Shown piece after piece: positions 13,575-16,648 of a stretch of 64,000 bases of DNA. The DNA lies in IMG/VR virus record IMGVR_UViG_3300042367_000228, positions 248,001-312,000 of that record; one strand, written 5' to 3'. Position 1 is the stretch's first letter; each line of letters starts with the position of its first letter. The position numbers and the translations under genes were made by a program. The notes beneath the pieces were generated by a model that ran no database searches, was not told where the DNA came from, and was given only the letters and a program-made list of their open reading frames with translations.

Positions 13575-14807
13575 TTACTCTTTTGGTTCTTCTGGAGTTA
13601 CTTCAGTAAAATCTGCACTAACTGTTTCTTCAGTACTCGTTGCTTCAGTAGCAGCAGCTGCAGCAGCGTTGGCTGCATCGGCTTCTTGTTTTTTAGTAAA
13701 TACCGGAGCTGCAGCTTCAAACAGTTTATTAGTTGCTTCAGTAATAGGTTCAACTTCTTCACCGTCTCTTGCAGTTTCTAATGCTAGTAACGCGTCTTCA
13801 AACGCAGTACGTTCTTCTTCAGTTAATTGATCTTTTACTTCGTCATAATCTTTCTTCAATGAATGAGATTGTGCTTCTGCACTGTTACGTGCTTCAATTA
13901 ATGACTTAGCTTTAGCATCTGCTTCTGCATTTTCCTCAGCTTCTTTAACCATACGTTCAATCTCAGCATCTGTTAGTCCTGAATCAGATTTAATAGTAAT
14001 TTTGTTCTCTTTGCCGGTAGTTTTATCTTTAGCACTTACATGCATAATACCGTTAGCATCAATATCAAAAGTTACTTCAATCTGTGGTTGACCGCGTGGA
14101 GCTGCGTCAATCCCTTCTAAGTTAAACTCACCAAGTTGTTTATTGTAACGATACAATTCACGTTCACCTTGACCTACTTTAATAGTAACTGCAGGTTGAT
14201 TATCTTCTGCTGTTGAGAATGTCTGGCTTGCTTTAGTTGGAATGGTTGTATTTTTCTGAATTAACTTAGTAAATACCCCGCCCATTGTTTCAATACCTAA
14301 ACTTAATGGAGTAACGTCAAGTAACAATACGTCAGTTTTATCACCTGCTAATACTGCACCTTGGATAGCAGCACCTGCAGCAACAGCTTCATCTGGATTA
14401 ACGTCTTTACGTGGTGCTTTTCCAAAGAATGCTTCAACAGCTTCTTGTACTTTAGGCATACGTGTTTGACCACCTACTAAAATAACTTCGTCAATATCTG
14501 ACAAACTAACTTTAGCATCAGCAATTGCAATTTTACATGGTTCGATTGAACGTTGTACTAAATCGTCTACTAATGCTTCAAACTTAGCACGAGTTACTGT
14601 TACGTTTAAGTGTTTCGGACCTGTGGCATCTGCAGTAACATATGGTAAGTTAACATTTGTTTGTGCAGTGCTTGACAATTCAATTTTAGCTTTTTCAGCA
14701 GCTTCTTTTAAACGTTGCAACGCCATTGTATCAGATTTAAGATCAACACCTGAGTCTTTCTTAAATTCGTCAATCAAATGATCCATTAATCGTTGGTCAA
14801 AGTCTTC
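13575..14807 (-). CDS. dnaK: DnaK (Hsp70) exon 2
   Basis: Starts [11 protein letters not shown]; [42 protein letters not shown]. Spliced product is 641 aa. Confidence 0.95.
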
Positions 14808-15955
14808 CAGTTATGTTATCGTTAAGCTCTTTATCTTAACTTCTTATACTTTCATATAAGCTCAGACTATATCTTAATTATAGACTTGCAATTATCAAAG
14901 TGCCATCGTTTCATATTTGACGAATCTCCAATTTTATTGCAATGTGGACAAGTTACTTGTTGTCGTTTTTTATTTTGTTTATATCTTTTTCCAGCAGCTA
15001 TACCAACTACCTCTTTAGAAATTAATCTAGGGTCATCTTTATTAACTGTAAATTTATTACCATTAATATCTTTAACAACTATCCGTCCTGCTGAAGTTGA
15101 TGTATACTGCTTTGATAAAAATTTTTCATCAGTAACTGAAACCATAATAATTTTACCAGTTTCATTAAACACTTTTGTTAACCCTTTTGTAATGCCTACT
15201 AACGATGTATCGTTTTTATTGTCAACTACTACAGTTTCGTTAGTTACGGTTTTCATAACTCGTCTACCGGTTGTGTGACCTGCATATCTATCAGGGTTTG
15301 CATCAAATGTACTTTTTGAAATTTTTACCACTGTACCTAATAAATTATCTTTAGCTACTACTTTATCTATAGAGCATTTACGTATTCGTTCAATACCAAA
15401 GGATGAATGTGTAATTACTCCACGACCACCTTCTGTTAAATTATAAACGTCGTCTCGTTTAATAAAGATCGAATCTACTAATTTAGCTTCATATTCATAT
15501 GCATCATGTTTTGAATTGCAAAATTCTAATATGTCGCGTTTGAAATTAGTTTTTCCATATTTCTTTATTGCTTGTTTTAATAATTTTCCAGACCCTATAT
15601 AGCCGTCGTTAATATTAGTAGTTTCATGTACACCAATATAAATGGTGTTATTAATTAAATTAGTTGTTTTGTAAACAAAATATATCTTATCCATATCTTC
15701 CCCTCCTATAATTTTATTTATCATAAGATTAGAAGATCTATAATTTTCCGCACTCTTGGGTCTTTACTGTCCTATCTGGACTCCATGACCTAGTCGTTGA
15801 ACCTTGAACTTATTCCTAAGTCCCTTGGCTGCTGATTTCCCAATCTATTCATTTTTTAACGTTCGCACTTATCATTACTAATTATGCTGTAGTATGAATA
15901 GCTCTAAGGGGTTCCCAGCAATTCACGGAATTTTTATACGGGAGGCTAATACTTA
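14808..15955 (-). mobile_element. Group I intron (phage IA-type) in dnaK, 1148 nt
   Basis: Exon 1 ends in U (GGU), intron ends in G; P1 GGU|UAA..UUAGCC; P GAAUUGCUGGGAA (15911-15924), Q AAUCAGCAG (15829-15837), R GUUCAACGACUA (15791-15802), S AAGAUAUAGUCU (14864-14875); P9 with GAAA loop. Removal restores TFLGG-EDFD. Confidence 0.93.
14867..15694 (-). CDS. Intron-encoded GIY-YIG homing endonuclease
   Basis: FVYKTTNLINNTIYIGVH...YIGSG; C-terminal CPHC...MKRWHFDNCK; internal late promoter GATAAATA ~15715; stop TAG lies inside the S element. Confidence 0.88.
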   Translation of the reverse strand: MDKIYFVYKTTNLINNTIYIGVHETTNINDGYIGSGKLLKQAIKKYGKTNFKRDILEFCNSKHDAYEYEAKLVDSIFIKRDDVYNLTEGGRGVITHSSFGIERIRKCSIDKVVAKDNLLGTVVKISKSTFDANPDRYAGHTTGRRVMKTVTNETVVVDNKNDTSLVGITKGLTKVFNETGKIIMVSVTDEKFLSKQYTSTSAGRIVVKDINGNKFTVNKDDPRLISKEVVGIAAGKRYKQNKKRQQVTCPHCNKIGDSSNMKRWHFDNCKSIIKI

Positions 15956-16648
15956 ACCACCCAAAAAAGTATCACCGTTTGTAGATAACACTTCAATTTG
16001 TTTATCGCCGTCAACATTAGCGATCTCAATAATACTAATATCAAAAGTACCACCACCTAAGTCAAATACAGCAACTTTGCGGTCTTTTTTATCAGACTTA
16101 TCAACACCGTAGCTTAATGCTGCAGCAGTTGGTTCATTAATAATACGCAATACTTCTAATCCAGCAATACGTCCTGCATCTTTAGTTGCTTGACGTTGTG
16201 AATCGTTAAAGTATGCAGGTACTGTAATAACTGCTTGGGTTACTTCTGTACCTAAATAGTCCTCTGCAGTTTTTTTCATCTTACGTAAGATTTCTGCAGA
16301 CACTTGTGGGGGAGCTAGTTTCTCACCATTTGCTTCTACCCATGCATCACCGTTTTCAGCTTTAATAATGCTATATGGCATTAAGTCAATATCTTTCTGT
16401 ACAGCTGACTCATCAAATTTACGACCAATAAGACGCTTAACAGCATATAATGTGTTTTTTGGATTTGTTACTGATTGACGTTTTGCTGCTGCACCAACTA
16501 GGATTTCGTCGTTAGTGTATGCGATGATTGAGGGGGTTGTGCGTGTACCTTCTGCGTTTTCAATTACTTTAGCAATTCCGTTTTCTAAGATTGCTACGCA
16601 GCTATTTGTGGTACCGAGATCTATCCCAATTATATATGATTTTGACAT
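15956..16648 (-). CDS. dnaK: DnaK (Hsp70) exon 1
   Basis: [38 protein letters not shown], ends NGDTFLGG. Confidence 0.95.

Follow-up and report, generated by a model that had tools for sequence, protein, structure and literature searches.

A probable mobile group I intron carrying a GIY-YIG endonuclease gene in dnaK of a T4-like freshwater jumbo phage

Results

The window, by which we mean the whole 64,000-nucleotide stretch of DNA analysed here, comprises bases 248001–312000 of a 372,016-bp viral contig (IMG/VR record IMGVR_UViG_3300042367_000228; genome G000) that has direct terminal repeats and is rated complete. On its minus strand lies a dnaK gene that is broken into two parts by a long insert, and the insert in turn holds an open reading frame (ORF) for a GIY-YIG homing endonuclease (Table 1). 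We conclude that the insert in dnaK of this T4-like freshwater myophage is very probably a mobile intron of group I, subgroup IA, and we infer how it would work from its anatomy, its distribution among related alleles and the selection acting on the exons around it.

Boundaries of the insert

The insertion lies in phase 0 between codons 231 and 232, at the junction TFLGG|EDFD (GGT|GAA), and the two exons, when joined, encode a 641-aa protein without a stop, in which positions 1–223 and 224–596 of the Pfam HSP70 profile abut exactly. The insert opens with UAA, which is a stop in frame with exon 1, and closes with a G at 14808. According to the review PMC3984707, group I introns that interrupt protein-coding genes often begin with such an in-frame stop. 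An intein was also considered for the insert, and is rejected because these first three bases form a stop in frame with exon 1. The 5' end of exon 2 has neither a start codon nor a ribosome-binding site, the first in-frame ATG being codon 8. The boundaries of the intron are set independently of any folding, because alleles that naturally lack it have the very sequence predicted for the joined exons. Excision of 14808–15955 had been predicted in the initial annotation to restore the TFLGG|EDFD motif and a complete DnaK, and both the continuity of the HSP70 profile across 223|224 and the intronless alleles agree with that prediction.

These alleles come from a comparison with the 80 closest viral dnaK loci, of which 76 are uninterrupted exactly at the predicted junction. 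Close relatives without the intron are L003, L004 and L006, whose exon 2 is 94% identical at the protein level, together with L008 and L009, at 89%, the last of which comes from a 372,173-bp contig. The insert is found at the same site in four loci (L001, L002, L005 and L007), the intron being 100% identical in the first three and 97.2% identical in L007. Intronless and intron-bearing alleles differ around the junction at positions −13, −10, −7, +6 and +12, all of which are third codon positions; the intron-bearing form has T at −13 and −10, G at −7 and C at +6 and +12. In six intron-bearing alleles with protein identities down to ~60%, exon 2 has no stop codons and a ratio of nonsynonymous to synonymous substitution rates (dN/dS) of 0.07–0.16, and for the intronless comparison the ratio is no different, at 0.10. 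Exon 2 is thus under purifying selection in alleles that carry the intron, which bears on splicing because exon 2 would be translatable only after the intron had been removed, and we take it as indirect support for splicing.

The ribozyme core

Two local matches to the Rfam model RF00028 are found at the insert, one at 15996..15665 (40.2 bits, E = 2.1e-8, model positions 1–253) and the other at 14877..14845 (21.7 bits, E = 0.0075), the latter spanning AAGAUAUAGUC and P9. Taken together, the RF00028 alignment, a motif scan and folding recover all of the core elements that had been claimed for the insert, namely P1 with a U·G wobble, the P, Q, R and S elements, P9 and the terminal G. P2 is absent. 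An unconstrained minimum-free-energy fold of the first 230 nt contains P1, P3–P6a, P7.1 and P7.2 (z = −2.8), and a fold of the 3' piece contains P9 and P9.1. Because P7.1 and P7.2 lie between P7 and P3', the intron belongs to subgroup IA, the phage type represented by the T4 introns, and the assignment stops at IA. A motif scan found no second copy of the intron in the phage genome; at genome position 127509 the S element has a match within an uninterrupted 1176-aa ORF, which was taken as a chance occurrence.

Covariation was examined in 98 distinct 5' modules of the family, aligned by sequence alone; more than 110 viral contigs had been retrieved with a 17-mer from the R element. P3, P5 and P6a are paired in 72–98 of the 98 members, mostly with four to six kinds of pair at each position; P4 and P6 do not vary, and P7.1 is partly supported by covariation. 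The differences of the L007 intron cluster in P5/P5a, and some are compensatory: C46-G117 is replaced by U-A, and U59-A107 by A-U.

Table 1. Features of the split dnaK gene, its intron and the intron-encoded endonuclease gene. Intron positions are counted from the first intron base (window position 15955).
Feature	Window position	Strand	Intron positions	Details
dnaK exon 1	15956..16648	minus		231 codons, ends TFLGG, last base U; Pfam HSP70 profile 1–223, E = 9e-108
dnaK exon 2	13575..14807	minus		410 codons and stop, begins EDFDQR; HSP70 profile 224–596, E = 2e-143
Group I intron	14808..15955	minus		1148 nt; RF00028 matches and exact presence/absence against intronless alleles
GIY-YIG homing endonuclease gene	14867..15694	minus		275 aa, in P8 loop; PF19835, PF01541, phrog_314
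GATAAATA, T4-late-type promoter-like motif	15715..15722	minus		27 nt before ATG 15694
Ribozyme 5' core	15737..15930	minus		P3, P4, P5/P5a, P6/P6a, P7 5' strand, P7.1, P7.2, P3', P8 5' strand
Ribozyme 3' part	14808..14884	minus		second RF00028 match, fold, motif scan
P1	15940..15962	minus	guide G10–C16	exon GGGUGGU (15962–15956) with guide GCCUCCC (15946–15940); U-1·G10 wobble at splice site
P3			26–32 / 204–210	
P4			36–41 / 121–126	
P5			46–48 / 115–117	
P5a			55–62 / 104–111	
P6			127–129 / 153–155	
P6a			133–138 / 145–150	
P7			161–165 / 1087–1091	
R element, P7 5' strand	15802–15790	minus		motif scan
P7.1			166–169 / 194–197	GGUC/GACC
P7.2			175–178 / 184–187	GUCC/GGAC
P8			211–219 / 1072–1080	
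P8 3' strand	14884–14876	minus		within ribozyme 3' part
S element AAGAUAUAGUC with P7'	14875–14865	minus		RF00028 match, motif scan
P9 with GAAA loop	14860–14843	minus	1096–1113	fold
P9.1	14840–14821	minus	1116–1135	fold
Possible P10			2–8	with exon +2 to +8; 6 of 7 pairs
Terminal G	14808	minus	1148	

The endonuclease gene and its upstream motif

The claim that the insert carries a homing endonuclease is upheld by matches of the ORF product to PF19835 (30.5–31.4 bits, cut-off 25), PF01541 (24.7–24.9 bits, cut-off 22.6) and phrog_314 'homing endonuclease' (E = 8e-43), which place it in the GIY-YIG family. The likely start is the ATG at 15694, which has a GGAGG ribosome-binding site upstream at 15706–15702; the program's ORF call begins at 15724, where an upstream ATG overlaps the promoter-like motif GATAAATA. 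No other 8-mer is as enriched upstream of the ORFs of the genome as this motif (19-fold; 20 of the 37 copies precede ORFs), and it resembles the T4 late promoter TATAAATA. Genome-wide, the motif nATAAATA usually stands 25–29 nt before an ATG, and the distance at the endonuclease gene is 27 nt. Several of the genes with the motif encode tail or virion proteins, the capsid gene has its own version (TATAAAAA), and the same place before related intron endonucleases is occupied by TATAAATA in L314 and CATAAATA in L165. The late promoter of its own that the initial annotation gave the endonuclease therefore stands as a motif, by enrichment, modal distance and conservation in related introns, all of which concern a motif match; it is reasonable to regard GATAAATA as a promoter-like motif of the late type. 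Elsewhere in the window, nATAAATA lies upstream of the genes at 49172–50755, 50830–51387 and 23876–24235.

As had been noticed earlier, the stop codon of the endonuclease gene is placed in the S element, the UAG at 14869–14867 falling within AAGAUAUAGUC. The ORF reads through the 3' strand of P8 and ends inside P7', so its translation must compete with folding of the ribozyme. Such competition would fit a separate, delayed expression of the endonuclease, as is known for I-TevI. The C-terminal motif of the protein, CPHCxxxGxxxxMKRWHFDNC, is common to one other GIY-YIG gene and two HNH genes of the genome, which suggests a shuffled DNA-binding module. These three genes are free-standing, at window 1433–2056 (minus strand) and at G000 333391–334212 and 345972–346805; the GIY-YIG gene has NUMOD3, and the motif takes the variant form CPHCxxxGxxxxMKR(W/Y)HF(D/E)NC.

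Probable movement of the intron between alleles

The intron of L005 shows 0 differences from that of the window over 1148 nt, whereas the divergence is 1.1% in exon 1 and 10.2% in exon 2. L005 has an L003-like backbone in which the intron is flanked by a window-like tract, reaching from about −55 on one side to +39 on the other, and a tract of this kind is what co-conversion during homing leaves. However, T4-like phages recombine heavily, and the mosaic alone is therefore no proof of endonuclease action: the intron might splice while the endonuclease has no activity, or does no more than assist splicing, and might be spread passively by general recombination in co-infection. A search of PDB sequences with the endonuclease gave no match, and hence no relative on which the active site could be checked. 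We nevertheless consider passive spread decidedly unlikely. The endonuclease ORF is intact in every copy, and in L007 it differs at 1 of 275 aa, far less than P5a of the ribozyme; full-length homologues of the endonuclease occur in other dnaK introns; the window-like tract of L005 is short and centred on the intron; and the promoter-like motif and the ribosome-binding site are retained.

RNA evidence and the weighing of splicing

Four metatranscriptome runs were compared with dnaK. The exact 1148-nt skip, with 14807 joined to 15956, is present in contigs of two of the four. In one run, a low-depth contig is identical to 15568–15701, at the 5' end of the endonuclease gene. In another observation, a 1570-nt contig of run X18 matches only the P4'–P7 core (window 15790–15846, 2 differences in 57 nt), and is probably a related intron in another gene of that sample.

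Several points weigh against an intact intron that is spliced in the window allele. First, the joined RNA contigs are 3–9% divergent from the window, as the intronless relatives are; because of this match they are no proof of splicing for the window allele, and they probably derive from such relatives. A check of metatranscriptome reads across GGT|GAA, proposed in the initial annotation, has thus found the joined form, but in divergent contigs that do not speak for this allele. Second, the P1 helix contains one U-U mismatch. Third, both RF00028 scores fall below the 50-bit gathering score, and a whole-window Rfam scan at the gathering threshold gave no match. The low scores arise because the model is broken in two by an 850-nt ORF lying in the P8 loop: introns of the same family that have no ORF reach 64–81 bits, above the gathering score, and the ORF-bearing introns L165 and L169 likewise remain below it. 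A permissive whole-window Rfam scan also misses the intron owing to its speed filters, and the genome-wide RF00028 scan was negative through the same filters, so that it is uninformative on further introns. The Infernal search with RF00028 that had been put forward as a check therefore yields the core and a separate P7'/P9 match, each of them sub-gathering. On balance, the self-splicing group I intron of the initial annotation is confirmed as an intron with the boundaries given; we infer self-splicing itself, the evidence for splicing being indirect rather than direct.

A different arrangement of a gene around an endonuclease gene is present in the same window. The nrdA gene (45700–48993, minus strand) is split into an N-terminal half at 47464–48993 (positions 1–222 of the Pfam barrel), a GIY-YIG gene at 46649–47425 and a C-terminal half at 45700–46662 (barrel positions 223–522) that has its own ATG at 46662, overlapping the stop of the endonuclease gene. 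An Rfam search of the nrdA split found no group I signal at E ≤ 1, there is no room for a ribozyme, and by its layout nrdA is a genes-in-pieces arrangement, not an intron. It might be supposed that dnaK is built in exactly the same way, that is, that the endonuclease gene divides it into two polypeptides that reassemble without splicing and that the ribozyme-like sequence is a relic. This alternative is highly improbable. The dnaK insert has a full ribozyme and the downstream half lacks a start codon and a ribosome-binding site, which is why we regard it as an intron rather than as genes in pieces. Furthermore, the ~290 nt that do not code, and that contain a complete group I core with covariation, are kept and are 100% identical between divergent alleles, and the split falls between adjacent residues of the LGG|EDFD motif.

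The chance that dnaK is a pseudogene made by a dead insertion, or that the insert reflects a chimeric assembly join, is negligible, since the same insert is present in independent contigs of different samples and in 14 DNA runs, which excludes an artefact, and both exons are open and under purifying selection.

Related introns in viral dnaK and hsp70

Related introns from metagenomes (L165, L169, L174, L314–L317 and giant-virus contigs) share the 17-mer AAGGTTCAACGACTAGG, 60–90% core identity and the host gene, dnaK/hsp70, with the window intron, and the phage copies also carry homologous GIY-YIG endonucleases. The closest ribozyme relatives lie at another dnaK site, DLGG|GTFD, 32 codons upstream, in L165 (a 318-kb contig), L169 (179 kb) and L174. 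Ribozymes of the same family split the hsp70 genes of giant viruses at DxGG|GTFD in L086, L098, L099, L115 and L117, of which L098 is an ordinary IMG/VR contig and the others are labelled GVMAG; these introns carry an unrelated ORF of 369–375 aa that is rich in Cys pairs. Unlike the window intron, then, L165, L169, L174 and the giant-virus copies occupy DLGG|GTFD, and L314 occupies both sites. P1 varies along with its target in this set: exon position −7 changes from G to C in L169 together with C to G in the guide, and in the giant-virus copies exon position −4 changes from U to A opposite a U of the guide.

Homologues of the endonuclease with 51–67% identity are found in dnaK at the window's site in L314/L315 (331 kb), L316 and L317 (440 kb), and the endonucleases of the two dnaK sites are homologous over their full length (34–40% identity). 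A single dnaK with two related introns is present in L314 (1717–5115 of a 74-kb ENA scaffold, with the same sequence on the 331-kb contig L315), one of 320 nt and ORF-less at DLGG|GTFD and one of 1150 nt with a GIY-YIG gene at FLGG|EDFD, both of which are preceded by GGGUGGU and have the guide GCCUCCC. In L317 (1400–4080), the FLGG-site intron is accompanied by a group I-like insert further upstream, with an HNH ORF, in GID|LGT; it ends just before DLGTGNS, so that the phosphate-1 motif would hold a third site of insertion.

A maximum-likelihood tree of 26 ribozyme 5' modules was too poorly resolved for the order of the sites or the number of site changes. For this reason we limit our claim to the following: at least two sites of viral dnaK/hsp70, which have the target of the guide sequence in common, have been colonised by one intron family. 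Both reverse splicing and relaxed specificity of the endonuclease are possible routes to new sites.

The target site in bacterial dnaK

The 20-bp core of the homing site, −9 to +11 (TTGGGTGGT|GAAGACTTTGA), occurs exactly in at least 120 bacterial species; those listed are mostly Pseudomonadota, with many Polynucleobacter (freshwater) and Methylotenera. In the best bacterial loci, 64–67 of 80 nt around the site match, and DnaK is ~73% identical to the phage protein. Position −10 of the bacterial sites is C, as in the intronless phage alleles. On sequence grounds, recognition of host dnaK by the endonuclease, an idea raised in the initial annotation, is thus conceivable.

The phage and the genes around dnaK

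With a G+C content of 35.6%, the phage genome carries seven tRNA genes and a permuted tmRNA. Its major capsid protein is a Gp23 of the T4 type (PF07068, E = 2e-80), a capsid profile search found no capsid of nucleocytoplasmic large DNA viruses (NCLDV) in it, and the phage DNA recurs almost word for word in lake-water metagenomes, with 99% of the sequence words in runs X1–X3; on these grounds we regard it as a T4-like freshwater jumbo myophage. A search of INPHARED for near-identical phages returned no relative, cultured relatives included, and the DnaK matches of a protein search in the same database came from huge phages, at ~55% identity, and otherwise only from records resembling bacterial contamination. 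The similarity of DnaK to that of Polynucleobacter and other Burkholderiales, together with the tmRNA, hints at a betaproteobacterial host. The permuted (two-piece) tmRNA is at 242596–243017 of G000, outside the window, and in the related jumbo phage L165 the tmRNA at 13315–13634 matches a betaproteobacterial tmRNA model (110 bits).

Beside dnaK, on the minus strand, lie genes for HSP20 (13019–13546), ClpS (12705–13010) and heme oxygenase (12175–12708), followed by those for a ferredoxin-dependent bilin reductase (11501–12178) and a RimK-type ATP-grasp enzyme (10593–11474), so that 11501–13546 forms a proteostasis cluster beside a bilin-synthesis pair. Other genes of the window encode a Rv2179c-like 3'-5' exoribonuclease (17260–17820), a T4 Rnl1-type RNA ligase (19700–20794), a 782-aa protein with an N-terminal Mtd_N (major tropism determinant) domain (21528–23876) and an Fe/Mn superoxide dismutase (45152–45703).

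Discussion

We propose that the intron would be transcribed within the dnaK message, on which ribosomes would halt at the opening UAA. The RNA would then fold, with the exon sequence GGGUGGU and the guide GCCUCCC forming P1, an external guanosine would attack after the wobble U, and the terminal G would subsequently serve exon ligation, so that GGU and GAA are joined and the 641-aa DnaK can be made. The GIY-YIG gene in the P8 loop might be expressed from its own promoter-like motif and ribosome-binding site. In a mixed infection, the endonuclease would be expected to cut intronless dnaK alleles, and repair off the intron-bearing copy would transfer the intron along with a short flanking tract of exon.

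The element can be best compared with the td intron of T4 and its endonuclease I-TevI. From general background, including the review PMC3984707, td (as well as T4 nrdB and sunY) is known to be of the same IA type with P7.1 and P7.2 and to interrupt a protein-coding gene of a T4-like phage. Like td, the dnaK intron has a GIY-YIG endonuclease gene in a peripheral loop, a promoter motif of the late type and an in-frame stop at the intron start. It differs from td in that the host gene is the chaperone gene dnaK rather than a gene of nucleotide metabolism, in that the ORF, which occupies the P8 loop, extends as far as P8' and P7', and in that there is no P2. Moreover, by the search of PDB sequences the endonuclease, with its C-terminal CPHC...MKRWHFDNC, has no detectable sequence similarity to I-TevI. 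A second comparison is Aeromonas phage Aeh1, in which nrdA is reportedly split by mobE into genes in pieces. There, too, an endonuclease gene stands between the halves of a conserved phage gene, and the nrdA of the window follows the same pattern; the dnaK insert, in contrast, has a full ribozyme and a downstream half without a start codon. A third is the jumbo phage PhiPA3, whose intron endonuclease gp210 contributes to competition between co-infecting phages, as PMC11620839 reports. PhiPA3 shares with the present case a mobile intron with an endonuclease, a jumbo phage as its bearer and a conserved gene held in common with co-infecting relatives. The two differ in phage lineage (T4-type Gp23 here) and in host gene.

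The mechanism is not new, as mobile group I introns that encode GIY-YIG endonucleases are classic elements of phages. In a library search of the literature, no paper was found that describes such an intron in dnaK of phages or hsp70 of viruses; viral dnaK/hsp70 appears to be an unreported intron host gene that has been invaded repeatedly. The view of the initial annotation that a chaperone gene is an unusual host is therefore supported in that no published case was found, but the present dnaK is not a unique case, because dnaK/hsp70 recurs as a metagenomic target at two or three sites. Also new is the presence of related introns at two or three dnaK/hsp70 sites of several jumbo phages, with giant-virus contigs at the upstream LGG site.

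It would be tempting to see the endonuclease as a weapon of host takeover and competition. Because the 20-bp core is identical in chromosomal dnaK, the enzyme could cut the dnaK of the host as well as rival copies; if so, the interrupted dnaK of the phage would be immune, and the infected cell would become dependent on phage DnaK. A related reading starts from the guide target GGGUGGU, which is present at two of the LGG motifs in dnaK: the intron family could have moved from site to site, as well as between jumbo phages and giant viruses, and would then be a natural case of ectopic group I transposition. These two ideas are speculative, and we consider them unlikely.

A practical consequence for annotation is that these introns escape gene callers and the usual Rfam thresholds, so that dnaK is listed as two fragments. 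A further new point is that two of the sites follow the same GGGUGGU, are served by the same guide and are both occupied in one gene, which offers a natural system for studying how group I introns reach new sites.

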